In this document: positions 13,164 to 64,000 of the stretch, piece after piece | Numbering within the stretch: position 1 is the first letter of the stretch | Layout: each line of letters opens with the position of its first letter | Source of the DNA: Kudoa neothunni | Taxonomy: Eukaryota; Animalia; Cnidaria | Reading direction: 5' to 3' | Length of the DNA stretch: 64,000 bases | NCBI GenBank assembly: GCA_964304625.1 | Contig: OZ199840.1 | Coordinates: forward strand, 6,383,120 to 6,447,119 | Notes under the pieces: model-generated | Told to the model about the DNA's origin: nothing | Database searches by the model: none | The model's input: the letters and a program-made list of their open reading frames with translations, nothing else | Translations under genes and position numbers: made by a program

Positions 13164-16100
13164 TTATTTTACAAGTCCTCCAAACACCTAAACAAAGTTA
13201 GCTGGCCAATAATATCTTTAATGATACTTCTTTCGGTATATGCTTTTTTGCCAAATCGTTATCGTCATCATCGTCATTCAGGTTTATTTCGTTAGGATTT
13301 GATACAGTATTAACATCAAATTCATTGGTATTTGCATCAGAGGTAGCCCTTAATGAAAAAACTAATCACGACAATCAACCATGAGTTTGTTAACTTGACA
13401 AATGAAATATTTTCTTTCAATTTATCACGTTCATTTGCTGCAGCGATCGCGTTTGCTTCCAATTGCTCCACAGCTATACAACCCAGAAATTAATTAGCCA
13501 ATTAATTTTACAGAAAAAAATTAATCACCTTGCATGGGATCAACTTCCTCGTCTTGGTTATGAACAAGTGTAACATTGATCTATTTTAGATAAAGATAAA
13601 ATATATTATCTTGTAAGAAAAACCTACCTTAGTGTGGAAGTGTGAAAGCATTGTTCTGCGTATACGTCGCATCTCTCTGAAGGTTTCAGGATTACCATGA
13701 TCTACCTCAAATTGCTGCCACGAATTCCAGAATTCAATATGGCTCTAAATATTTGATTTAATATGTTAACAAAAAATTATATCAGGTATAGCTGAAAATT
13801 TTTGAAGAAGAAACAGCCACTAATTCTATCTTTAAGTCTTGTGACCTGCCTTCCAAATTATTAATTTTTATACAGTTGAATTTTTGTCGAATTTGTTCAA
13901 CACTTAATTACATTAATAAGGCTTATATATTTTTTTAAAACAACTCCAAGCTCCTCGGGATTAAAATTAACTTTTCATCAAAATAGCGCTCATACATTAA
14001 AATTTCTCATACTAATGTAATTAAATAAATATTCATATAGTACAATAATGGATCGGTCGTACGTAACCACTTGGGGATGGGGAATGGTACGTACTGTATT
14101 GCGCAAGCGCACAAAATTTTAAGATAATAAATTAGCTATAACATAAAAAATACCGAAAAACATTTATTTTTTTGTTTAAAAATGCGATTTGAATTGAATA
14201 AACATCCGAAATAGGATCAGATATTAGCTCCCACGCCTTTGAGTAATGATATTTAAAATAGTTGCGAAACTCTTCTAAACGAAATAAGACCGCCTTTGAA
14301 AGGTTCAGACTTTTATCAAAAAAATCATCTTTCGTTTTTGAATCTTTGGGGAGTTTCTATCATTGCGCCATTGTCACTACCATGAATTAGGGAGGACACC
14401 ATTATAAACCATATTACTATATATTCACAGCATGTGCCTATGTTTATGCTTCATTTTTTAACTAGCAGCCATATTTACGTGGCTATAAAAACTTATTAAT
14501 TTTTTGAATCCGACAGAGAAAAATAAAACGCTTAGTTTAATCACGCGGTTAAAGCAAAAAGGTACGCGGGACTGGTCCTCACGTGACTTTTTATTTTTCG
14601 TTTATTTGTAGTAACTATACTTACAAGTTATTTAACGCGTGTAATTCTAACATTATATAACTTTTGAAATCATATTAAATATGAGATAATCTTTTAATAT
14701 ATGAAATAACTAATGTACATACGACCGGTCCATTATCGTAATTTCAAAAATTAAATCTACTTTAATTAATATTCTCCTTGATTCTATTATCTATATGTAT
14801 TCAATCACATACAATCCGATTAATTCAAAGCCCATTATATAGATATATATATATATATATACAATCTCAAGAAATATTTATAAGTCCGTGTACATTTAAT
14901 TCCTTCTGTAGAATTTTGGTCATAATTCTTTCCCGTTCACCACTATACTCTGGGGGAAATGTAATAATTATTTACAGCTACTAATTCAAATTTTAAAATT
15001 AATCTTTAATTTACCAAATTTAATCCAAATAAACTTAATATTTTATGGTTAGTTTCAAAAAATGCTCATAATTATAGTCATAAAAACTTAAAATTAATGT
15101 GCACAACGACGAGAAAATAACACTCACCTTGGGATCTGCCATTTGGGCCAAATAATTGTAGATGGAACGAGACCGGTCTATCTCACCTAATTTCGTCTCC
15201 ATGGCAACATAGCGTAATCCGATTTTTCTATAAAAAAATAAAACAAAAACCCCAACACAATCCTCACAAAGCAGATTGATTATTTAGACATTCAATGGCT
15301 TTATCGAAGATAGGTCTGGTGCATGTGAGACCCACAAGCTCGACACAACGATTGATATAAATAGTAAAAATTTGATATTTTTCACTATCCAGCACATTAT
15401 CGATAGCTCTTTCATAGATGGATATGGCATTTTTGGTAAGACCATATTTCTCTTCAACTTGAGCGTACGCAAGGTAGAACCATTTTGAGAATTTTTTGGG
15501 ACAATTCGAAAGCACCTGCTCGAAGAGGTCTCTAATACGTTCCAATTTGCTCGATCCCTATTAAAAAAATCAGTTCAAACAAAAGTTTATTTTTTTAAAC
15601 CAATAAGGCAGCTAAGACACATACATAACGATGAACAAATTTGATCAAGTAGGTGTTCCAGATATCATACACATTAGGCCAATGAAACAATTCGATACCT
15701 CGTTCAAATTCCTAATAGTTGCGTCAAGGTGAAATTAACTTAGCCGATAACTTAATTAATTAAAATAACCTTGAATGATTCTTCAAAGTAGTTGTGTGAC
15801 TCAAGAAAACTAGCAAAGTTAAGCACAAGTTGTGGATTGGCAATTTTCATTGACATAATTTGGTTGTAAATGCTTTTGGTAGCCTACAATAATAGATGAT
15901 GTGATGAGAAGAGAAGAGAAAAGCCGACCTCAAATGTAGAACAATTTTCGCTAAGATCACAATAGAAACACCACAATTTTAACGATTTGAAAAGCCGATT
16001 TTGGACAGTTTCATTTTGATCAAAGTATTTGACTTTGGCTTTCTGAGAAGGAACAGCGGTGGCACGTTCCAAAAGACATAACGCGAGATCAATATTGCCG

Positions 16101-17481
16101 TTGGAGATTTCCATTTCGGCATAATGACACCAAATCGACACCAAACTTTCGACATAACGATAGTTATGAGTGGTGGCCCGCTCGAAAATTATTCGGGCTT
16201 GTTGAATATTGTCAGAATAGAAACTTGCATATTCGATCCACAGTTGGCTTAGATTTCCCACAGTGTATTTACAGTTGATTGTTGCGATCGCTTGTTCGTA
16301 GGTGTCAACGACTTTATTAGGTTGATCCAAGTCTTGGAATAATTTGGCACGTTTCAACCATTCGTTGACATTGTGCGGGTTTTGACGAAGAAGAACACTA
16401 CTCAATAGAATAGCTCGCCTATCGATGAGATATTCGAGTCTTTCAAGCCGAAGTTCAAGATCAAATTTCTCAGCTTCCATCTTTGAAGGTTTGATACGGG
16501 ATTTGGCTTGCTCAAGTTGTTTCATATTTTCAACTTTAGTGGAAATAATAGTCTCTTCAAATTGAACGTATGTGTCGAAAATCTGGCCAAAATCCTTCAC
16601 AGTCATAACTTTGTTGATAGCTTCCTCAAAAATATCACGAGCACTTTCAAACATACCAATTTGGATGTAGTAATTAGCCAACATGCACCAAAGTTGTCCA
16701 TTACCATCAGTGAACTTTTCCAAAGTCGATCTGATTATTGTTGGGATCGACATATTGTTTAGTTGTTGAGGATGTTGGGTGATCAGCTCGCATAATTGAA
16801 AAATGAATTGGAATCGAGTTTTTTGACGTTTCGATTGGAAGGTTTTATTGTCGATAATTTTAATAATGTGGTTGGCAACCTGGTCGTAGTTTTCACTTTT
16901 TAACAAAAAATCAACATAATCTTCAATATTTTCCGGATAGATTTTGATGTAACGTTGGTAGATGTGAGAGGTGGTTGATGGACTGTCGATGAAATTTGCA
17001 AATCTAATGTACAGCGGCCATATCCGATAATGTTGTGTGATTGGTAAAGCTCGTAGAGATTCATCAAACGTTTCACGAGTCTTTTGAACCAACCTCTGAT
17101 GAAACAAAAATTTACAATATTCTATCCAAATTCGAGGCATCTTATGCATGAACAAAAGAGCTTTTTCATGGGCCGCATTGGTTTCTGCGTATCCAGGATC
17201 AGATATCGACTTTGTCAGATTGTGTGTTCGTCTGAGACGTAGATAATTGTTCCATAATTTATAACTGTATGGCATTTGTTGCAGAGCTCGCTCAAATATC
17301 ATATAAAGATCGTTAGGATTGATATTTTTTCGACTGGCCTTATACTCAATGTAACGGTTCCAACTAACCATACTGTAAGGGTGTCTCAGAACTTCCTCCT
17401 CAAATGGTAAATCATTTTCATCCTAAATCTATAATTAATCATGTTAGATCGATAAAATTTTACAATTATGAAAGAGTCCAT
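13164..17481 (-). CDS. XAB2: Pre-mRNA splicing factor SYF1/XAB2 (HAT/TPR repeats), multi-exon
   Basis: N-terminus [34 protein letters not shown]. The 495-aa ORF has [35 protein letters not shown] and [14 protein letters not shown]. Later exons give [19 protein letters not shown] and C-terminal NPNEINL...IPKEVFGGLVK*. Confidence 0.95.
14043..14738. mobile_element. TIR element with TA flanks inside the 1.38-kb XAB2 intron (13745-15127)
   Basis: TA|CAATAATGGATCGGTCGTACGTA ... TACATACGACCGGTCCATTATCG|TA; TA TSD suggests Tc1/mariner-type. Confidence 0.6.
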
Positions 17482-41294: not shown

Positions 41295-43272
41295 TTATTC
41301 TAGAACACTGTGTTTGATGCTATACACAAAATATATGACTTCCCCTAATAAGAAAGATAGTTGTAATTCTATGAAAATAAATATCTTACCAATAATGATC
41401 CAAACAATAAAACGAAGCCAGGTAACATTATGAAGTGACGCCATAAGAAAAACGTTGATAAACATTCCTAATAAAGGCACGAAAGGAACCAATGGTACAG
41501 AAAATGCAAGATGTTCACATTTGGCTTTATAATAATTCATTATTTTGTACAGAAACAGCACAATAAACACATCAACAATCACAAGTATCACCATAAGGAT
41601 GGAAATAAAATGCCTTCGTAGACTAAAGTTGTACACGTCGAAAGAAATATGTTGGCCACTTCGAACAATAATGAACGATATGACAACCGAAGAAAAAAAC
41701 AAGAAACTCAGCAAAATATAAACCATATCTTTATACACGATTTTGCACGCGGAATCTTCACATTCCGACATTTTTACTCTCATGACGATAACACCTACAC
41801 ATACACCGGTGTATGCTAGCAATGTTCCGATAGACATCATCTCCACCAACTCCTCCACTGAGAGAAAAAATGCTAACGTTCCTAAAAGATATGACAGTTA
41901 TAATAATATTAGGTAGAATTAATAACAATTGAAAAAAAATTCTACAACAGTTAAGTGAACGATACCTGACATAAAACCGCTCACAATTGTTGAAACTATT
42001 GGAATATTGGTAGATTCCGAAATCCAAGCCAAAGGAGCAAAGAGAAGTCCATCACGAGCCATAGTATAGATAATTCTTGGAGTTGGGAGAAGAGATGAGA
42101 AAACACAGGTCATTAAACCAAATGATGCCCCAACACTGACAAACCACGTAGCAAATTTGTTGTCATTTCTCAGAAAAGCTTCAACAAATGCTGCACTTCC
42201 TTTCAAACTGTTGTATGGTGCTATAAGTGTAAGAACAGCAGATACCACTATGTAGAGGGATGCGCTGATGGCAATTGTTAGAAATATGGATTTCGGGATT
42301 GTTTTCTTAGCATTGATAGCCTCATCTCCAAGAGAGGCCACAACGTCAAACCCAATATATGAAAAGAAACAAATTGAAGCACCAGAAATTATTCCCTGAA
42401 TTCCGTAAGGCGCAAAATTCGACCAATTATCCACATTTATGTAGAACAATCCAGCTACAGTTATAACCACAATGGATGCCAAGTTAATCAATGTTCCGAT
42501 GGTGTTAAGGAATGCATATTTTTTGATTCCGTACACAATTACTAGGAAAGTTATCGTCAAACATATAAAAAACGACCAATAATCAAAGGAGTATTTGGTC
42601 GGTGATTTATTAATGTTGATGTTGCTTTCACTTAGAGATAACATTTGAACAAAAAGTTTGCTTACGTAGGTGGTAAACGATCTCACGATAGCAGCCGCTC
42701 CCACCACATATTCTAGAATTATGTTCCAACCAATAATGAACCCTAGTGCTTCTCCCATTGTCATATAAATGTAGGAATATGCTGAACCACTTCTAGGATA
42801 GATAGAGCTCAGTTCACAATAGCATAACGCACTGAAAAATGATGCGATTCCAGCAATAATATATGACAACACAACGCCGGGTCCAGCCACGTCGCTCGCC
42901 ACAGTCCCTGTAAGTACGTAGATTCCTGCACCAATGGTACTGCTAATTCCGATCATAGTCAGATCAAATGTTCCCAAAACTCTGTTCAATCCATTTGGCA
43001 TGTCTAAAGTGAGTTAGTTGAAAATATTGGAGCCTGGTGATTAATATTTAAAAAACATTTAAAAAAAAATCAGAAAATTTATATTATTTTACAAAATGAT
43101 TTTTTGATGGATATATGTATTAGAACCTACCTACGCTACTCCGGTCAAGCTGTGAGGGAATATCGGGAGTTCTACTTAGCTTTCCATAATAATAGTTGAA
43201 CTTTTTACGATGACCACTTGATTCGGCAGCAGTTGACGTCTTGTCATCACCATCATTTGACTCGGACAACAT
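41295..43272 (-). CDS. Cationic amino acid transporter (SLC7A1-4/APC family)
   Basis: Exon 1 (43272-43131, MLSESNDG...GKLSRTP) splices to DMPNGLNRVLGTFDLTMIGISSTIGAGIYVLTG. Further motifs: GSAYSY, CFFSYIGFD, PRIIYTMARDGLLF, LVEMMSIGTLLAY, FSVPLVPFVP, TWLRF, IYFVYSIKHS. Confidence 0.93.
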
Positions 43273-45750: not shown

Positions 45751-48700
45751 CTATTCCCACTCGATTGTTCCGGGGGGTTTACTGGTGAGATCATAGAGAA
45801 CTTTGGAAATTCTTGGCACGCTGTTCACAATTCGCTGATGTATATTGTTAAGTGTATCCAAAGTAATATCGACACCAGGAACTGCAGGTAAAGCAGTCAT
45901 AAAATCAGAAGTAATGACGGGGCGCAACACAACTGAGAATCGCACAGTACTATGGTCGGCAAACTCGATATCGTCAAACTGTATCGGCAGAAGTACCACA
46001 GGAAATTGGCTGACAGAGTTGTATTCGTCGGATTCAACCAACGTTTCGCTCACGATATGGTCAGCTTTTCGCAGTATATCGACAACTGGAGGACAGATAT
46101 GGCAAATAGTGATTCGATCAATGGATTTTTCCACTATACGTCCACCAAGAGCATACAAAACTCTATTAGATAATAATCAAATAACGTACACTTATGATTG
46201 CAAAATAAACAAATATATGAATATGAGTATTACCTATTTACAATATGACAGGTTTTGGTCACGAATTTGGCTAGCTGGACCATGTTTGGCCAGTTAGGTT
46301 CTGGGTTGTCAGATGATATTACCAAGGGATGTTTATAGCTTCTGCCATCACCCTACATATTTTCGCCAACGTTATAATACACAGACATTCTTCCTATGAA
46401 AATTACCTGTACCCCAACACTATTGATAGGCAGAATATGGCAGAACAGAGGAAATTTATCAGTGTCCTGGGTTAATTTATCGAGAAAATCCAATTCTTCT
46501 GATGTTAAAGTCTCTTTAATCTCATCAAACATGGCATTGGTGCGTTTCAATTTGGTTCGTGAATGATAATTAACCATAAAATTAAGCATCGTTTGGGTGG
46601 AGGGAATAACACTGATATTTTTTGGTTGATTAGAATCATTGCATAAAATACGAATAGCCAATCCAGGTCCTATTAGAATGGATAGTATTCAGTTTCATAA
46701 AAAGCAAAGAGACACAGATGGCAATAAAAACTGCACAATATTTAATTGTTACCTGGGAACGGATGTCGATTGATTAAGGCAGGTTCGAGGCCTAGATCAA
46801 TACCGATTTTTCGAACCTCATCCTTGTGGAAATCTTTCAAAGGTTCCAAAATTAATCCCTTAATTAGTAATAACAATAATAATAATAATTTAATGGTTCA
46901 GAGTAAAATTATTTGGAGGATGAAAATTAAAATTACTTTTTCACGATTTTCTCTCACCAGAGCAGTATCGTTGTGATGTGTCTTGATTGTTTCCGCACAT
47001 CCAGAAACAACCGTAGATGCACTTTCGATGAGATCAGGCCTAAGAGTGCCTTGAGCGATTATTGTATTATCACGATTCAATTTGAGTTCATTCATTATTC
47101 GCTGGCAAACTCGCATAAACGTGTCGCCTATTATTTTTCTTTTGTGTTCAGGATCCACTGTTTGGCAGAGAGGACCGGTCTCTACCAGCATCCTGGGCAA
47201 CGGTTCACAAGAAGAGTGACTGTTTGAGTCCGAGTGAGCGGTGGTAGGATACACCTCCCGAGGGTCGACAACTTGATAAACGCTACTGACACCGTTTTCA
47301 GTGTGTGCACCATTGACATTAGCTCTAAGTTCAGGTTGTTGTGGTTGTTCAGCGTTGAACTCTGGCCCGGTTTCAAAAGTGGTTTTTGCCCAAAGGAACT
47401 CCCGATCGCATTTGTACACATTTAAATCGACACCGACAGATTTAAGTTGAAGGCAGATGGATTCACTTTCCGTGTGACGCATAAAACCATGGTCGATATG
47501 CACCAACGTAACTTTTTCAGACGGTAAAGCTTTTCTAATGAGTGTTCCACAGACCAGAGAATCCACTCCGCCACTCAACAAAACCAACACATGATAATCA
47601 TTATCAAATTTGGATACGAAATTTTTTATTTCGTTCACCGAATCGTCAATACGACTACTAATCGTGAATTCTGGTGTACATCCAGCTATCTAAATTGCGG
47701 TGTAACTTGTAAACAGTGATGAAAGCACACGGACGTTACGTTGAATAGGAAGTTCTCAAAGAGTCGATGTCCTATTTCGGTGAGAGTTACTTCGGGATGG
47801 AACTGAACCCCGTAAAGCGGGAGGCTTTCATGAGTTATCCCACACACAATACCACTCATTGATTTAACATCGCAGTGAAACTCTGCTGGTATTCCAGTAC
47901 AGATATCACCATGAGTAAGTAGAACTTTTGCCGAGTTGGGAATTGATCTATGCGTAGATAACAAATTTATTAATATCCAAGTAATCTCAAAATTAGAATG
48001 TTTCAAAGATCAATAAACTTAAGAATAACAACAGTTACGAAGCTATTATAAAGTAGATTAACGCAATTAAAAAAATAATATCTAATGGCCGTTAGTCAGA
48101 TATATTATAGACGATCAGTAATGCTGAAATAATTAAAAATATACATTATTTTTTAAAAGGTGCATAATATTTTTGATCGTAATTAATGAAATTTAAGATT
48201 ACTGGAAATATTTAGTAAATCATTTGTGAAAAATTGAACTTAGTTAAAAACTATATACTCGTAAAGGGGGCTCTTTGAATCAATGTCAACGTCAATTTGG
48301 CCATCTTGACGAGTGTTACTAAGCGAAGCAACTTGACCATCGAATAATTTGACCATCAGCTAATCAGTAAAAAGCGTAGAAAAACAGAAAAAGGGAAATC
48401 TATACCTGCATGCCAAAACAAATACCAAGAACTGGTATGCCCATTCTAAAGATATCAGGATCGAAAGATCCATACGGAAGGTCATTAACACTTCCGGGTC
48501 CACCGGAAATTATAATTGCCCTTTTTATAATAAAAAGAATAATATTTGTAGATAAGAATTTAGTGAAAACAATAATACGTGTAATTTTTCTGATGAACAA
48601 CAATCGATGGTGTTGACAACGGAATTATTTCTGTTCGTACATGTAATTCTCTGACTCTTCGATCAATCAACTATACAACCCAAACAATTATCACGCAATA

Positions 48701-49321: not shown

Positions 49322-49739
49322 ATGTCATTCGAATTCGGAAACAACTTTGGTAATATTCATACTATTAAATAACCCACTCCTAACTATGTTTAGATCCATT
49401 CAGCAATGAAACTGTAGGGAAAGTAGCCGATGTACAACCTGTACATATTCGTGTGCAACAACGTAATGGTAGAAAGACCTTAACCACAATTCAAGGTTTA
49501 GATGATGAGCTGGACAAGAAGAAAATATTAAAAGTTTTAAAAAAAGTATTTTTTTAGTGGTTGACTGATTGATCTGATGAGTTGTTTTATAGAACTTCAA
49601 TTGTAATGGTACCGTTACTTCCCACAAAGAATATGGAGAGGTCATACAACTCCAAGGCGATCATAGAGAAAAGGCTTCAAAAATTCTCACTCAATGTGGA
49701 TTAGTTGATGCTAACAACATCAAAATCCATGGTTTCTGA
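49322..49739 (+). CDS. EIF1: Eukaryotic translation initiation factor 1 (SUI1), 3 exons
   Basis: MSFEFGNNFDPF...VHIRVQQRNGRKTLTTIQGL...KKNFNCNGTV...YGEVIQLQGDHR...IKIHGF*. It is absent from the ORF track because of introns. Confidence 0.96.
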
Positions 49740-54248: not shown

Positions 54249-54734
54249 TTAATGATGTTCCGGCCTCACTTTGTATCCAATGTGTCTGTAACCGAATACT
54301 CTTCTCCTTCCAATAATCTCTCCAACGAAAAACCAAAATAACAGTTCAGTCATTACGATAGAAAAAACCGCGGCATCTTTGAGTGAGGAACTGAGAATGT
54401 ATTCTTGATCAAAATGGAGGATATATTGCACTCCCTAGAGGAGTTTCAATCCAATGAATATTTTAATGAGAGTAGCAAAAGATATACTTGCTTGAGATCA
54501 CTGACTGAATGTTTAAATGGAAACATATCGTACAATTGAATCGCTTTCTTTTGCAAAATTTCTATAAAATTAGTTATTATGTGAAAAAAAAACCTCTCAA
54601 CAAGAGAAGATTCGTGGCAAACCTCCAATTTCGATAGACTGAAGTAATGTAAACCTGTAAGCTTTTTGAACAACGGGTTTTTTGGCTATATTCATCACCG
54701 TGCCACTTAAACGAGTGATATAGGCGGACGACAT
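54249..54734 (-). CDS. ATP5MG: Mitochondrial ATP synthase subunit g, 4 exons
   Basis: Spliced MSSAYITRLSGT-VYITSVYRNWRF...-EILQKKAIQLYDMFPF...-GVQY...SLKDAAVFSIVMTELLFWFFVGEIIGRRRVFGY. The E..xWF.VGE.IG.R..GY signature of subunit g is present. Confidence 0.85.
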
Positions 54735-54827: not shown

Positions 54828-57757
54828 ATGTTAAATTTTTATGCAAATTCAAAATCTATAATATGGAACCAATATAGTTCTTTTTTGGTTCAACGGTATT
54901 TAAATTTCCCTCATTTTTCTCTACCAATAATTGCTTCAATTGTAGATCCATTCCAAAGTATCACACGTCGATTGGTTATATCTTGTCTCGACTTCCACGG
55001 AAATCCAATGAAACAACAAATGGGAAAAAGAAGGATGATTCTGATTTAATGAAAAATCTCGAGAAAACATTCAAAGATTTGGATAGTTTATTGAGGCGAC
55101 TACTTTCGGGGAAAAACAAGTCAAGCGCCAAACCAACACCTCCTCAAAATAAAAAAAACTCAGATAAAAAATCTGACGAGAATGATTTTGTTAGAAAAAA
55201 TTTTGAAAATGTCCAACGGGAAATTGAGCGAGAACAAAATATTTTGAAATATTCCCTAAGTAGATTTTTTTGAATTGATTACAATTAAAAAGGTTGTAGT
55301 TCTATTTCTAATGATAACAGTGCCGGCCTTGTATGATCACAATTTTTGCAGAGAGAGTAGAGCAGTAGAAATTTCTTATCGGGAGTTTGTGAATACGATA
55401 CTTCTTCCGAAGAAGTCTGAAACTAGTGGTGGTAGTGAATCGTCTATCAAAATGACAATCGTTGACGACTCGAAGGTGTTTGTGGAAGGTCACAGACTTG
55501 AAAATGTATCATATTTTGGAGTTAGACTTTAATCGTTTATGATTTTGGGATTTGGGTAGGGAAAAGAATGTTTCTTCTATATTTTGAATTCAGTCGATTT
55601 TGAGAAGCATCTAAAAGAAACACTGAAAATTCACGGCTTGAATGACAATTATGTACAAATAAACTATTGGAATAGTTTGTATGTTAGTTTTGGGTTGAAT
55701 AATTGAATAATTCGTGTTGAATTTGTTACTTGTAGAATTAAACTAACTCGATTGGGAGTGTTTTTAATTGGTGCGTATGTGTGGATCTTTGTACGTTTGG
55801 TCTCATTCTTCTTCAGACCATCCACAATGCCAAGACTTGTCGATATGGCTGTAAATAAGAATTGGCAGTAATTAGAATGACGGTTCAAATAATTTTTAGA
55901 AATCTCGAATCAACTCTACGTTGCCTACTAGAGCTATTGAACGGAAAAATTTTATTCCTGTTATAAGTGATAAACGGTTCAAGGATGTTATAGGATACAA
56001 GGAGCAGAAACAAGAATTGATGGAATTTGTGGATTTTCTTAAAAATCCCAAAAAATATCATGAAATTGGCGCAAAAATTCCTAGGGTAAGAAATATCTGC
56101 TGTCTTAATGAATCTACACACACGTGTATCACTATTTACTAATTATGTTGAATAGGGAGCAATTTTGTATGGTCCTCCTGGCACTGGTAAAACATTGCTT
56201 GCCAAAGCTGTCGCTGGTGAGGCTGGAGTGAATTTTTTTTCTGCTTCTGGTTCCGAATTTCAACAATTGTTTGTTGGTGTCGGCCCTCAACGTATCAAGG
56301 ATCTTTTTGAAGACGCCTCCAACGCATCACCATCAATCGTATTCATCGATGAGATCGATTCGATTGCTATCAGCAGAGCAAAAGCTAGCAAAAATACTCA
56401 CAATGAAAACACTGCCACTCTCAATCAACTTTTGGCTCTAATGGATGGATTTAAAACCAACAAAGATGTGGTTGTGCTTGCTGCAACAAATCGTTTCGAT
56501 CAGTTAGATTCTGCGATACTTCGTCCTGGTAGATTTGATCGTCATATTCTATTCGGTTCCCCAGATCTTGAATCGCGCTATGATATGTTCAAGTATTACC
56601 TTCTGAAGACTCCTCTCGAGGATTCAATTGATTATGTGGCCAATAGAATGGCCCTAATGACCACTGGTTTCGTTGGTAACATTATTCTACTACTTTTTTT
56701 ATTGTGGGAGTCAAATTATATTCGAATGTGAATTTAGGTGCGGATATCAGCTTGATTTGTAATGAAGCGGCTATTTTTGCGGCTAGAGATAATAATGACG
56801 TAGTGAAAATGCAAGATTTTGAGAGAGCTACTGATCGGGTTATTGTTGGTAATAATTATTTTGCTGTTATTAACAATACAACAATACGATCATGTGTTTT
56901 TGAGCGTTTATTTATGTTTGGCTAAATTTAGGTAGTAAAAGCAGTGTCAAGTTGCAACCACACGAAAGACAAATTGTATCGTTGAGAGAAGCTGCTAAAG
57001 CGGTGATGGCATGGTTCAATAAGGACGCTCAACCTATTCTAAAAGTAACCTAATGATTTACGGCGTTATATGGATAAGCGGTTGGTTGACTTGGGGTTGT
57101 TAGGTTAGTATTGTACCTAGAGGACAAGAACTCGCATACACACAGAAATACATCAAAGAGGAATACCTCACCAACAAAGAAAAAGTAATTATTTAATATC
57201 GAAATTCTCTTTCATTTTCCACCACACAGTTGGACGCGATGCTGATGGTTTTGTTGAGTGGGAGAGCCGCCGAAGATGTTATTCTCAAGCAGTTGTATTC
57301 GGTGGCGAGTGATGAACTGTTAAAAATTACAAATCTCGTCTACAAGCAAGTATCTCAACATGCTACGTGGAGGTTTTTCATTTACAATAGGTGGGGGTCT
57401 TTGGGATGGGCGATTCGATTAGAAATGTCTCGTTTCAATCGTTATCTATGGAAAATAAATCATTATTCCCATTACGCCCTGAATACAACAAACTAATTCA
57501 AGATGACATCGATTCCAATGTCAGAACAATTATTAACAACGCCTATGAAAGAACCAAGAAGATGGTAATCCTGCACAAAGATCTTATTGTCAAAGTATGT
57601 GGTGATGTTGTTGCTATATTGAAATCTGTGGTGATTTTCTGTAAATTAGCTCGCTAAATTCCTCAATGAACACGAACAGGCTGACAACAAAGATCTCATA
57701 TCGATTTTAGGCACTAGACCCTATACTGATGATGTGCTACGCAGAATTGATCATTGA
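54828..57757 (+). CDS. AFG3L2: AFG3L2-like mitochondrial m-AAA (FtsH family) subunit lacking the HExxH zinc motif
   Basis: [15 protein letters not shown]...[13 protein letters not shown]...GAKIPRGAIL, Walker [15 protein letters not shown] pore loop, Walker [29 protein letters not shown]41 domain: [21 protein letters not shown]...KVSIVPRG...LSGRAAE...ASDEL...FGM...ILGTRPY. Motifs are closer to AFG3L2 than to SPG7. Confidence 0.88.
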
Positions 57758-59622
57758 TTATAAAGTGCTTAAACTATTTTTATTAGTGTGTTTTTAAGCG
57801 TTGTTGTTATTGTAAACGTGAATTTTATTTTACGGATTTTGTGTTGAATGAATAAATAAAATAAGAGTTTTTGGAGTTAATGATTAGCCTCACATCAAAT
57901 AGGAAAACTTGTGTAAAAATTTAATCTTACTTCGAAAGGATTTTTTATCGGTATATAGAGTTTTAAGAGAAATACTCATTATTAAAGTTTTGCCAAGATA
58001 TACTTTTGTCACTGATTGGTACTAGCCAAGAATTGTTGATAATTAACCCCAAATATGCAATATTGGACAATACATCCGTCGAAATTTCATAACGTTAATA
58101 CAAGCTCTGCTTTAATTGTATCTAAGAATCGGATAACCTAGTAGAAGCTATGATTTTTTATTAATTATATTTAGCATAAATCGATTGTATCGACACATTA
58201 CTGTCAAGCCTCGCTGTGACTTTTCTATATTACTTGTGGTTGCAAAGAAACCCAATTTTAATGTATTACGTGATAATGGAGATAATAACGATAGTATTCC
58301 AATTATAATGAGCTAATTCAGACTTGGGGATATAATTATATTAAGTTTCGTCATTATGTACCTCTAAAATATAGAGCCTGTATTATAAACTACAATTTAT
58401 AGTTTATAGGTCACAATCTTTGATTTGTTGTCGTTTTTGAGTCCGATAGACTTCATTTTTTACCATTTAATTATATTTGTAAACTTTAAAAACATCTTAT
58501 GTACTTTAAAAATGATTTCTACTCATAAAGTGAATAGAAATTAAAAAATACTGCTTCGTCAATCACTCTCGCAAATTGACATACAATAAAAGAGAGGGTA
58601 ATTTTCAGAGAAAATTTAAAAACCCAATAAATTTTACTCACAAGCTGTATACAGATTTAATTTTCACAAACTGTTATATTTAATTATCTAGCCCACTCCT
58701 TCGCTTTTAAAGGCGTGAAATAAGTATAGTCAAAAATAATATAACTAGAATATCCTTTATCGTGTAAAGGACCTGTTTAAGTATTATTAGGTTACATTTC
58801 TACAGACATATGAGATATAAAGAAAATAGAATGATCCTAGTTTTATAAATACTTATTCTTAAAAAATTTTAAGCATTTCTATAAACATATTAAATGAGTT
58901 TTATAACCCTGAGTAATAAACGTCTTAGCGGTTTTAAGTAAGAAACAAACCGCAATGTAAAAGAATCCTCTTATTAAATTTTGACGCCATTTAATTTACA
59001 TCCTGTCATGTAAAATTTATCTCCGGTTTAGAACCCCTAACGTAGACGAAAGTTCGCTATGTCAACATTTATGTATAGAATCTAACAGAAAGTTTGAAAT
59101 GTAGTTATTAACTTATTCTGAATCATTTTATCAACAAAATTCTTCGTTTTTGGACCAAATTTTGATTAGAGGGTGTAATTTTTATAAGTTAAAGTATAAT
59201 CTTTTCATGTTTAAATTTGTTTTGTTTGCGGTCTATAGATAATATATTGCGGAAATATTTTTATCTATAACGATTTAAATAATTAACATGTTTAATAAAT
59301 AATTCGTCAGTAAGTATCATCAAATTACAGGAATAAACGAAAAGTAGATAAAAATCCTATTCTTATGTATCGTAACCATGTAAAAATTTTATTCTGTCTT
59401 TGAAATGAATTGAAAATTTATTTTATATCAAAGTTGTAAATAATAGCTTAACCCTTTAACGATTTTAGGGTAAATTTTACCACAAAGCGATTTTTTATTC
59501 ATTATATCTATTTGTTTCAATTTTTCGATCTTATCAAATCTTCGCTATTCCTGCAACTTATAATGATCTTTGTCTTTCGAACAAATTGGAAAAAATTAAC
59601 GAATAAAAAAGTTTTCATTTAA

Positions 59623-62600
59623 CCCTTCCGGTACCAACTGGGGTATTTAAGTGACCCCATATTATCTATTTTGTTTCTAAATCCAAAAATCAGCTTCTGA
59701 TAGTCTTCAAAATTTCAGAATACCTCAATTACTATTATTTCGATATTTTGATGAAAATATTTTTTACAATATAATTAAATCTAATGAATAGATTCAAAAA
59801 TAATACTAGAGTTAATTTTTAATGCATCGGATTAGTTTTCTAATGTTACATATTTGTTTTATAAATATCAAAAATAGCTTTATCACCCCGAAAATTTGAT
59901 AAAATCCGTTCTATTATATGATAAAATGGTGCGCCTTTCTAAATATTACCGCCTCGCGGATTAACGAGGATTAATCCGATTACGCCACGCGCTTAACATT
60001 TCTTGTGGATATTGAGGTAGCGACTGTTAAATAACTTTTTTTGAGACATCGGTAATATTTAGTATGAGACTAGACCAAACCATTGATGATGTTGAAAACT
60101 TATTGAGGATTCTTCTTCGGTAGATAATGATAGTCGCTCAGAATATGAAATATGTGAATCAGACGATTGTGTTATTAGTGATATAGATAATGATTCTATT
60201 TTTTCTTCCCCGTCTGGTCTTGAGTGGTCCAAAAGAATTTGTTCGAAAACGAAAACTAAATCACACAACATCGTTACTTCATCCTCAGGCATTTTAGATG
60301 AGACAAACAATATAACGTCCATTTTTGATGCCTTTGAATTGTTTATGTCGGATGATATAATTAGTGAGATAGTAAAATACAGCAACAAGTACTGCGAAGA
60401 AACTAACCCAGAGACACACACGACAATAACTAAAAATGAAATAAAAGCATTTATAGGCATATTAATCGCTGCTGGGCGTTCAAATGGTAAGATGCTTGCT
60501 CATAGGAATATGTGGGATGGTAGTCCATTATTCAAACAATTATTCTTCCCCACAGTGATGTCCAGAAACAGATTCACTTATATTTATAGAAAAATCCGTT
60601 TTGACGATAAAGCAAATAGAATTTATCGGTTTCAAATTACAAACGACAAATTCGAACCTTGCCGCCAAATTTTCGATCTGTTTAATGAAAATTGCTTGAA
60701 ATATTATTCACCAGGCACGCATATTACAGTGGATGAAAGGTTAGTAAGGTTTAGGGGTAAATGTCCGTTTCGGGATCAAACTTTGGGTGGCTGCAGACGT
60801 AGAAACGTCATACCTATTAAACATTCAACCGTATACTGGGAAGATCGGTGGAACAAGGGAAATAAATCAGGCTGAAAATGTTGTCACAAGACTTGTCTCT
60901 CCATTTTATAGAACTGGCCGAGGAGTGACCGTAGACAACTTTTTTACATCCGTTTCTTTAGCCACGAAACTCTTCAAAGAGAACCTGACATTGACAGGGA
61001 CAATTAGGTCGAATAAACGCGATATCCCCAAAGAATTTTTAAAATCGCCACGCCGAGAGGTTTTCTCCTCTCTGTTCGGGTTTTCTGGTCATCTTTCACT
61101 TTCTTCCTATGTACCCAAAAAGAACTATGCGGTCAATATATTGTCTACCGAATTTCATGATTCTTCAACAGAAGGCACATATAGAAAAAGACCAACGGTG
61201 ATTCTTCACTATAACAAAACCAAAGGTGGTGTTGATAATGGGGATAAAATGACCCAGTCATACTCCTGTTCGCGACCTACTCGTAGATGGCCACTGAAGA
61301 TTTTCATGGAAATCATTGGCATAGCTGCGTTGAACGCATATATTATTTGGATCCAACAAAATTCTGATTGGAAAAAAAATGATCGTAGCAAGCGACAGAA
61401 ATTTCTTCGCGAGCTTGCTATAGAATTGGCAACACCCAATGTAGCATATCGTCGTGAGAATTCCCATACTCTTCAATCCCACATAAAGTATGGTTTCCAA
61501 TTTTTTGAAATCTCTACCAATAATGACGATTTGACGATGTCTGAATCAAATTCCACTCAGCAATCAAAGAGAAATAGATGCCATTTTTGTCCTCGGAATA
61601 AGGATAAAAAATCCAGCCTGAGATGTTTCAACTGCCTCAAGTTTGTTTGCATAAAACATAGAGTAAAAAGAAATATTATTTATTGTTTGGATTGTACCGA
61701 TTCTTTGGAATAAATCGTGTTAATATATTTTTTTATTCGGCATATGGTTGCAGATTATAAATTATACACAAATTTTCACTAGTAATTGAGTGCGATGTGT
61801 AATTCATTTTACGATCTCTAATGCATTATCATTTATGACATATACAATTTTGGTCTATTATAATAAATAAATTCTACCCAAGGCTCAACGGATTCACAAT
61901 TTTTGAATTTATACACAGTCATGCCATTTGGGAGAAAAAATATCGGCCTGTTGAAAAAACGAATAAAATTAACCTCGCCACAGAGGAAAGAATAATTTTG
62001 TTTACAAAATAATTCTCTACTTTGAGAAATTTTACCAAATATGACTCGTAAAATTAAGAAAATATCTACATAAAAGTAAATATTCTAATTTCTGTTTTCG
62101 CTACTATTTTGCGAATTTCAAAAATAATAAAATAATGACAAGGCGAAAGTGATTTTGTTGTACAAATAAATATTAAAAATAATTACGTACAAATATGACA
62201 GATATGTTGAATATTATTTTTGGTGCCTTAAACACTGATGCTCAAATAATGCAAACTGAAGTCACTGCGCCATTCATTGTTTAAAAATATTATCATTTTG
62301 TGTATTATTCCATGGATGTAACTATTGACACGGCAAATAATATTTAGAGGTCACTAATTTTGGCTATATTTAATTATTTATATCACATCGCTTCGCTTTT
62401 GCCTGTCAGGAATAATTAAATAGAGCAGATTTTAAACGATTAAACCTATACAAAGTTTGTGAGTAAGAGTCGCTGAGATAAAAAATTTATATTGAGTAAG
62501 CGTACATGCAGTTTATGACTAAATTTTGTGTCTATAGCATCTGCCTACTAAAATTTATGAAATAATATAGATCAGCATTGGATAATAGAAGTCTTCGCTC

Positions 62601-63040: not shown

Positions 63041-63228
63041 TTAAAGATTATCCTCTAACGTTTTGGGGGATAAAATTTACCCCATATTTTTATCACTTTA
63101 ATATAAAGAGTATATTGTATACTGTGAAATAACGAATTTTTAGTAAAATCAAACGAGTAGATTTTAAGAAAACAACGAACAGAATGACTAGTTGATGTGA
63201 CGCGCGTGCGCGCGGCGCATAATTCCAA

Positions 63229-64000
63229 ATGAGAGACACAAGTGGTTTCATTGACGAATTAACCTCATCTGGAAGCGAATTTGATGACCAAATTATCGAT
63301 GAAAATGATATATCGGACGAAGAAATAGATTCAATTGATACCAGTGATAATAATTTAAAAAGTAAATATGGAATTCTTTGGACTTTGTCAAAACCATCTA
63401 CGAGAAAAACCTATGCCAAAAATATAATGAATTCCATTCCTGGTGCCATTTCAAATGCGTTGTTAGAAATAAAATCATTCATTGATTGTTTTTTGTTATT
63501 TTTTACTTCAGAAATTATCGGCATTATTATAAAGTACACAAATAAGCATGGAAACCATTATTTCAAAGATGAGTGGCAAGATATCGTAGAAGTTGAATTC
63601 AATGGTTATGTAGGTTTTTTAACATTAATGGCTATTCATACAGATAGGCAAGAACCGTTGCGCGAACTTTTTAGCGTCAATGAGAGCAAGGAAATTTACA
63701 GACGATTGTTTTCACATAAGCGCTTCACTCAAATTTCCAGATCCTTTCATTTTAACGACTTCAATACAAGATCGGAAAGGAAAACAGCTGATAAATTTTT
63801 CTCTATTCGTGAGATATGGGTTGATATACTGCCAAAATGTTTTGCTCCAAACCAAGATATTACAGTGGATGAGCAACTCGTATCATTTGGGGGAAGATGT
63901 CCTTTCCGTCAATATATGCTCATGAAACCGGCGAAGTATGACGTTAAGTTTTTTTTATCGGTGGATCCTACTTCCAACTATGTTTCAAATATCAGCGTGT
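63229..64000 (+). CDS. piggyBac transposase of the outer element (5' part, open to the window end)
   Basis: 257 stop-free codons: MRDTSG...SKYGILW...IIKYTN...DKFFSIREIW...TVDEQLVSFGGRCPFRQYMLMKPAKYDVKFF. Confidence 0.85.
   Translation, partial: MRDTSGFIDELTSSGSEFDDQIIDENDISDEEIDSIDTSDNNLKSKYGILWTLSKPSTRKTYAKNIMNSIPGAISNALLEIKSFIDCFLLFFTSEIIGIIIKYTNKHGNHYFKDEWQDIVEVEFNGYVGFLTLMAIHTDRQEPLRELFSVNESKEIYRRLFSHKRFTQISRSFHFNDFNTRSERKTADKFFSIREIWVDILPKCFAPNQDITVDEQLVSFGGRCPFRQYMLMKPAKYDVKFFLSVDPTSNYVSNISV

Follow-up and report, generated by a model that had tools for sequence, protein, structure and literature searches.

A Kudoa neothunni m-AAA gene with intact motor motifs and a dismantled zinc site: a candidate protease-dead subunit of a mixed ring

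Can an animal m-AAA subunit keep its motor when its protease site has been dismantled? The question is raised by a gene in the window, the stretch of 64,000 nucleotides of the Kudoa neothunni genome that we analysed (assembly GCA_964304625.1, contig OZ199840.1, positions 6,383,120 to 6,447,119 of the forward strand). The assembly spans 40.2 Mb in three chromosomes, with a scaffold N50 of 12.0 Mb and a median intron of 49 nt; very few parasite transcript reads mapped (PMC12239612). In human AFG3L2 zinc is bound by H574, H578 and D649, and the HExxH motif is described as strictly conserved and needed for activity (bioRxiv 10.1101/551085). In the reviews consulted, FtsH proteins that are naturally protease-dead are confined to plastids, cyanobacteria and some bacteria, and our literature search, incomplete in its coverage, found no natural protease-dead m-AAA subunit for animals or mitochondria. 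An earlier note, made from the letters alone, had read the gene as an animal m-AAA pseudoprotease, acting either as a dislocase or chaperone or as a subunit of a hetero-hexamer, and its AFG3-type homology, intact motor motifs and dismantled zinc site support that reading.

The AFG3L2-type gene, modelled by hand, has 13 exons that encode 754 amino acids, separated by 12 GT-AG introns of 40-83 nt, with no internal stop or frameshift. Its features are as follows.

54828-57757 (+): whole gene, 13 exons, 754 amino acids
54828-54895, 54946-55259, 55300-55505, 55560-55678, 55736-55850 (+): exons 1-5, from splice signals and hydropathy only
55900-56085, 56156-56675, 56738-56848, 56932-57044 (+): exons 6-9, from homology
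57104-57184, 57230-57349, 57391-57594, 57650-57757 (+): exons 10-13, from homology
54828-55027 (+): N-terminus resembling a mitochondrial presequence by composition only (7 K/R, 1 D/E and 11 S/T in the first 50 residues)
55238-55334 (+): predicted transmembrane segment 1, about residues 121-140, across intron 2 (Kyte-Doolittle peak 1.58; hinges on the choice of a 40-nt intron)
55758-55814 (+): predicted transmembrane segment 2, about residues 244-262 (Kyte-Doolittle peak 2.17)
55900-56848 (+): AAA+ ATPase domain and lid (Pfam AAA, E=3e-44; AAA_lid_3, E=1e-7)
56171-56194 (+): Walker A, intact
56267-56278 (+): pore loop 1, LFVG, intact
56339-56359 (+): Walker B, intact
56441-56452 (+): ISS motif MDGF, intact
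56519-56542 (+): arginine finger, LRPGRFDR, intact
56985-56999 (+): dead zinc motif REAAK, that is, HExxH without both His, with Glu kept and Gly changed to Ala (6NYY alignment, conserved columns)
57104-57184 (+): substrate edge-strand exon, PRG kept, LG changed to LA (G595A; conserved-column comparison)
57257-57274 (+): GGRxAE motif as SGRAAE, first Gly changed to Ser (SGR also occurs in some active homologues; reference comparison)
57302-57319 (+): VASDEL, aligned to GAQDDL, Gly changed to Val and the third zinc ligand Asp (AFG3L2 D649) changed to Glu at 57314-57316
57391-57757 (+): C-terminal protease-ring helices, with FGM and the equivalents of S674, Y689 and R702 (AFG3L2 numbering) kept (reference comparison)
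57851-57856 (+): AATAAA polyadenylation-like signal, about 95 nt past the stop (from the sequence)
54249-54734 (-): ATP synthase subunit g gene, head-to-head with the m-AAA gene (Pfam ATP-synt_G, E=6e-11)

An AAA module with Walker A and B, SRH and lid is followed by an M41 domain, and by fold and homology the protein belongs to the FtsH/M41 family. Pfam gave no match to FtsH_ext, the N-terminal exons being placed by composition, hydropathy and splice signals. Walker A and B, the FVG loop, the arginine finger, the splice sites and the frame, all of which the earlier note had called intact, are so in the 13-exon model. The start codon lies 93 nt from that of the ATP synthase subunit g gene, and the two genes likely have a promoter in common. 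This head-to-head arrangement, together with the AATAAA past the stop, would lend indirect support to expression of the m-AAA gene. A search for sequencing runs that contain the gene listed no RNA run, and one metatranscriptomic run yielded no reads, an outcome that does not bear on expression.

Elsewhere in the window lie remains of piggyBac-like transposases, at 60096-61713 (+) and 63223-64000 (+), the first of them (Pfam DDE_Tnp_1_7, E=1e-32) with a frameshift near 60750-60870, and an eIF1/SUI1 gene at 49384-49736 (+), recognised by Pfam match. From their translations we take further loci to be a GMP synthase-like gene (45751-48624, -), a cationic amino acid transporter-like gene (41298-43013, -) and a SYF1/XAB2-like gene (15887-17422, -).

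The zinc site is encoded largely in the exon at 56932-57044 (+), where the catalytic Glu codon (56988-56990) is retained between an Arg codon (AGA, 56985-56987) and a Lys codon (AAA, 56997-56999). Human AFG3L2 (6NYY), the only PDB match of this exon, places its HExxH helix in register with it; weak alone (E=0.049), the match is joined by three other exons for which 6NYY is also the best PDB match, four exons in all. Numbered through these alignments, H574, H578 and D649 of AFG3L2 become Arg, Lys and Glu in the Kudoa protein. Both losses described in the earlier note are thereby borne out, namely REAAK in place of the two zinc-binding histidines and VASDEL in place of GAQDDL. Four cleft glycines are replaced as well (G568A, G595A, G621S and G636V). 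With REAAK for HExxH and Glu for the third-ligand Asp, the protein lacks the hallmarks of an active M41 peptidase. Speculatively, the Arg and Lys at the His positions may pair with two Glu residues and fill the empty zinc pocket.

A scan of three forward frames and the reverse strand of the gene region found no HExxH, which excludes an alternative exon that supplies it. Contigs from three DNA runs, one of which covers the whole gene, have zero differing letters across it; all three runs derive from a single sample, probably the source of the assembly itself, and so check the assembly rather than the species, the dead zinc site being known from one genome. To reach AGA from a His codon takes three base changes, and to reach AAA takes two. 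Sequencing error and A-to-I or C-to-U RNA editing were both rejected on this count of base changes. That some peptidase activity survives at a modified metal site (Glu566, Glu640 and others), or that the site is an assembly artefact, is barely credible. In favour of such activity, the catalytic Glu remains and the Asp-to-Glu change at the third ligand is conservative, but arginine is not a zinc ligand and lysine is one only rarely. Plant FtsHi proteins likewise keep only the Glu (xExxx; PMC8197885), and an artefact is at odds with the matching read contigs and with an assembly QV of 48.5 (PMC12239612).

Was the site lost selectively, or is the gene a decaying duplicate, or its protease domain one under no selection? 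Decay would fit the long branch of the protein in our trees and the failure to find an orthologue with exon-length queries, to which full-length relatives are invisible. We used 49 reference FtsH/AFG3 proteins as a yardstick of conservation. In the AAA domain 114 of 148 conserved columns are retained, compared with 107-111 in the other myxozoan FtsH proteins of the set, and in the protease domain 33 of 61, equal to the active C2 paralogue (33/61); protease-domain identity to the references is 30-36%, against 29-41% for that paralogue. A stricter comparison took the 24 protease columns with conservation of 90% or more across the 49 references and one and the same residue in four HExxH-intact myxozoan proteins. 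Seventeen of these are kept and seven are lost (A563S, H565R, G568A, H569K, G595A, P601I and D640E). The losses take in every one of the three zinc ligands (P=0.017 under random losses), and six of the seven map to the HExxH helix, the edge strand or the third ligand; the paralogues, in the same test, lose 1-3 columns out of 18-20. Changes in the AAA domain affect 5 of 73 invariant columns, a number below or close to that of the paralogues, and the unusual ATPase changes are E431L just ahead of MDGF, N515L in the lid and R384K. The residues that hold the AFG3L2 protease ring together (T654, M666, S674, Y689 and R702; bioRxiv 10.1101/551085) are matched in the Kudoa protein, M666 within FGM.

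Divergence tells a similar story. Protease-domain pN to the paralogues is 0.44-0.49, with pS near saturation, and stands at 0.45 between the two active paralogues. In a neutral-decay simulation the chance that the protease exons stay free of stops was 0.04 once 0.1 substitutions per site had accumulated and 0.003 once 0.2 had. These values and the pattern of column losses speak against the neutral decay that the earlier note had named as its alternative, as do the two His codons, each altered by more than one base change, the canonical splice sites and the open frame across 13 exons; stops, frameshifts, broken splice sites and neutral-type divergence, the marks of a pseudogene, are absent. A genome search found the gene in single copy at the DNA level, and its AAA domain is only 52-54% identical to those of the paralogues, on which grounds a recent duplicate was rejected. 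Taken together, the open frame, the retained motor and ring residues and the clustering of losses at the zinc site argue for targeted catalytic loss. As far as the coding sequence can tell, this points to selective loss of the protease rather than decay, which we regard as highly improbable.

The earlier note had also left two matters to the genome, whether an HExxH-intact AFG3L2 or SPG7 exists and where the gene falls in a phylogeny. Four distinct FtsH-type genes are present: a YME1L on C2 with HEAGH, the dead-site m-AAA gene, and two HExxH-intact m-AAA paralogues, so the first is answered in the affirmative. The paralogue on C3, at 5.73 Mb, reads HEAGH, SARDD and FVG; that on C2, at 0.185/0.218 Mb, reads HESGH and GAMDD with an LVG pore loop. 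Two trees, with long branches and with named animal AFG3L2 and paraplegin left out of the set, unite the three Kudoa m-AAA proteins (100/99; 99) amid AFG3-type sequences, away from YME1L. This grouping suggests an m-AAA duplication within the myxozoan line, and the dead-site gene and the C2 paralogue have five intron positions in common. The C3 paralogue may be paraplegin, its scores of 41.2 bits to AFG3L2 and 38.3 to paraplegin being ambiguous between the two. At the position of AFG3L2 G671 the dead-site protein has Arg, and the Gly is missing in all three Kudoa m-AAA paralogues.

The C2 paralogue differs in another way.

C2:185.4-186.3 kb and C2:217.8-218.7 kb: C2 m-AAA paralogue, two copies

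Its pore loop 1 reads QSLVGMG, FVG having become LVG with loss of the aromatic, and its zinc site is kept; in AFG3L2 the pore-loop aromatic, F381, grips substrate (bioRxiv 10.1101/551085). A 1.8-kb intron lies ahead of its AAA exon. A Logan contig of SRR33849685, presumably from another myxozoan, carries an orthologue that is 79-81% identical, has introns of 34-38 nt and is under strong constraint. It has the same LVG and HESGH, which indicates that the paralogue set is old and the LVG change conserved. Arabidopsis FtsHi1 also reads LVG; such a loop is thus tolerated in heteromeric motors and is no proof of a dead pore. The two copies lie in a duplicated block (C2:173500-234098, at least 28 kb, 99.77% identical, offset by about 32 kb) that is either a real tandem duplication or an unpurged haplotype. 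The block also carries a gene for a GTP-binding protein.

We are now able to propose a role for the dead-site protein. On balance, and with moderate confidence, we read it as one subunit of an m-AAA ring of mixed composition in the inner membrane of the mitochondrion, competent as an ATPase but dead as a protease. The subunit would co-assemble with one or both HExxH-intact paralogues, grip and thread substrate through its canonical FVG loop and leave cleavage to the zinc sites of its partners by intersubunit complementation. After duplication, selection on the catalytic site would have relaxed while selection on motor and scaffold was maintained. There is precedent for such a division of labour, since yeast regains respiration through intersubunit complementation when AFG3L2-E575Q is paired with paraplegin, and rings that mix wild-type and inactive subunits are functional (PMC3192828). 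Similarly, a protease-dead type B FtsH supports PSII repair and an ATPase-dead one does not (PMC9020784). In these engineered systems, as in our proposal, one subunit provides ATPase and scaffold and another proteolysis, but they are laboratory mutants, whereas the Kudoa loss is natural, extends to every ligand and is a fixed feature of the genome. Against this reading, the C3 paralogue, which has every canonical motif, could work alone, E431L, N515L and R384K leave full motor activity an assumption, and exon-length searches retrieved no orthologue.

A lesser probability attaches to the other option of the earlier note, a stand-alone ATP-driven dislocase, unfoldase or chaperone, homo-hexameric or separately complexed, that extracts proteins from the inner membrane or draws them across it without degradation, in the manner of Ccp1 dislocation by yeast m-AAA or of the plastid Ycf2-FtsHi import motor. 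The AAA domain, with FVG intact, retains more conserved columns than any other in the myxozoan set, the cleft is seemingly filled (G568A, G595A, G636V) beyond what mere loss of function requires, and m-AAA dislocates Ccp1 through its ATPase, for which the Walker motifs and not the zinc site are needed (PMC12994072). However, substrate would have to find a way out of a homohexamer whose chamber is closed and catalytically dead, and FtsHi proteins themselves act in complexes with active FtsH12 (PMC9020784). The partner protease of a Ccp1-like pathway was also sought: an exon-wise genome search, insensitive by nature, detected no PARL-like rhomboid, the single rhomboid found looking RHBDD4-like. 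A hetero-hexamer subunit is accordingly favoured on the available sequences, given the HExxH-intact m-AAA partners in the genome and the missing PARL-type rhomboid, itself a weak test. The same insensitive search gave no match to Peptidase_M48 (OMA1/STE24) and detected one Band-7 family locus; losses in mitochondrial proteolysis (M48, PARL-like rhomboid) are possible in this genome.

Less probable again is a structural or regulatory subunit that joins the ring and damps or redirects its proteolysis while its ATPase contributes little. The kept ring-interface residues are compatible with this, as are alterations close to the ISS motif and in pore loop 2 (E431L; a loop 2 without an aromatic), but Walker A and B, the sensor Asn, DGF, the arginine finger and FVG are all present and the invariant AAA columns are largely unchanged. 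Returning to the motor-only subunit of a mixed ring, we tentatively extend it, as a conjecture more doubtful than not, to a split of m-AAA function in myxozoans after duplication, into a motor-only subunit (the dead-site gene) and a protease subunit with an LVG loop (C2).

Comparison with known systems sets the protein apart. Human AFG3L2 (6NYY, MEROPS M41) has a layout of leader, two membrane segments, AAA and M41 domains, which the Kudoa gene matches with a putative leader and two predicted membrane segments ahead of its AAA and M41 domains, and FVG, DGF, the arginine finger and several SCA28-related ring residues are kept; the differences are R/K/E for H574/H578/D649, the lack of an aromatic in pore loop 2 and the Arg at G671. 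Paraplegin (SPG7) is likewise an m-AAA subunit active only within a mixed ring (PMC3192828), but it supplies proteolysis itself, and exon 6 of the dead-site gene scores 46.2 bits to AFG3L2 versus 33.6 to paraplegin. A further comparison is with Arabidopsis FtsHi1/2/4/5, FtsH-family ATPases in which both HExxH histidines are replaced and the Glu is kept (xExxx; PMC8197885) and which work beside an active FtsH in the Ycf2-FtsHi-FtsH12 plastid import motor. They are plastid proteins, mostly of i-AAA-related group 3 ancestry (PMC9020784), whereas the Kudoa protein is AFG3-type and presumably mitochondrial. FtsHi chains score 18 bits against the Kudoa exon, versus 46 for AFG3L2. The loss of the HExxH histidines is common to both, but this is an animal nuclear gene with neither plastid or cyanobacterial location nor FtsHi/FtsH12 ancestry. 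Judged by sequence, it is at most functionally like FtsHi and not FtsHi by ancestry, the loss being independent.

A word search with the AAA exon, restricted to proteins of 94-300 amino acids, returned generic matches of 51-59% and no orthologue, and in a large representative protein search double-AAA proteins dominated, and no relative with a single AAA domain scored above about 240 bits. The C-terminal exon had no match in proteins or metagenomes, and the Atlas yielded only generic M41 clusters, under 0.9. Blank exon-length searches of this kind do not show absence. A double-His replacement of the REAAK kind occurs in none of 71 FtsH-like proteins long enough to check (0/71), the five misses among them looking like intron read-throughs or truncations. 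A single-sequence fold of one paralogue exon was uninformative (pLDDT 36).

If myxozoans do divide m-AAA function in this way, the split would amount to intersubunit complementation that arose naturally and became fixed, and the dead-site protein would be the first protease-dead m-AAA subunit described from animal mitochondria. A fixed protease-dead animal m-AAA subunit would naturally test which m-AAA functions (dislocation, chaperoning, assembly) need the ATPase alone, and the same system would test the number of active sites that a ring requires. The answers would bear on the mechanism of SCA28/SPG7 and on the upkeep of the highly divergent myxozoan mitochondrion.
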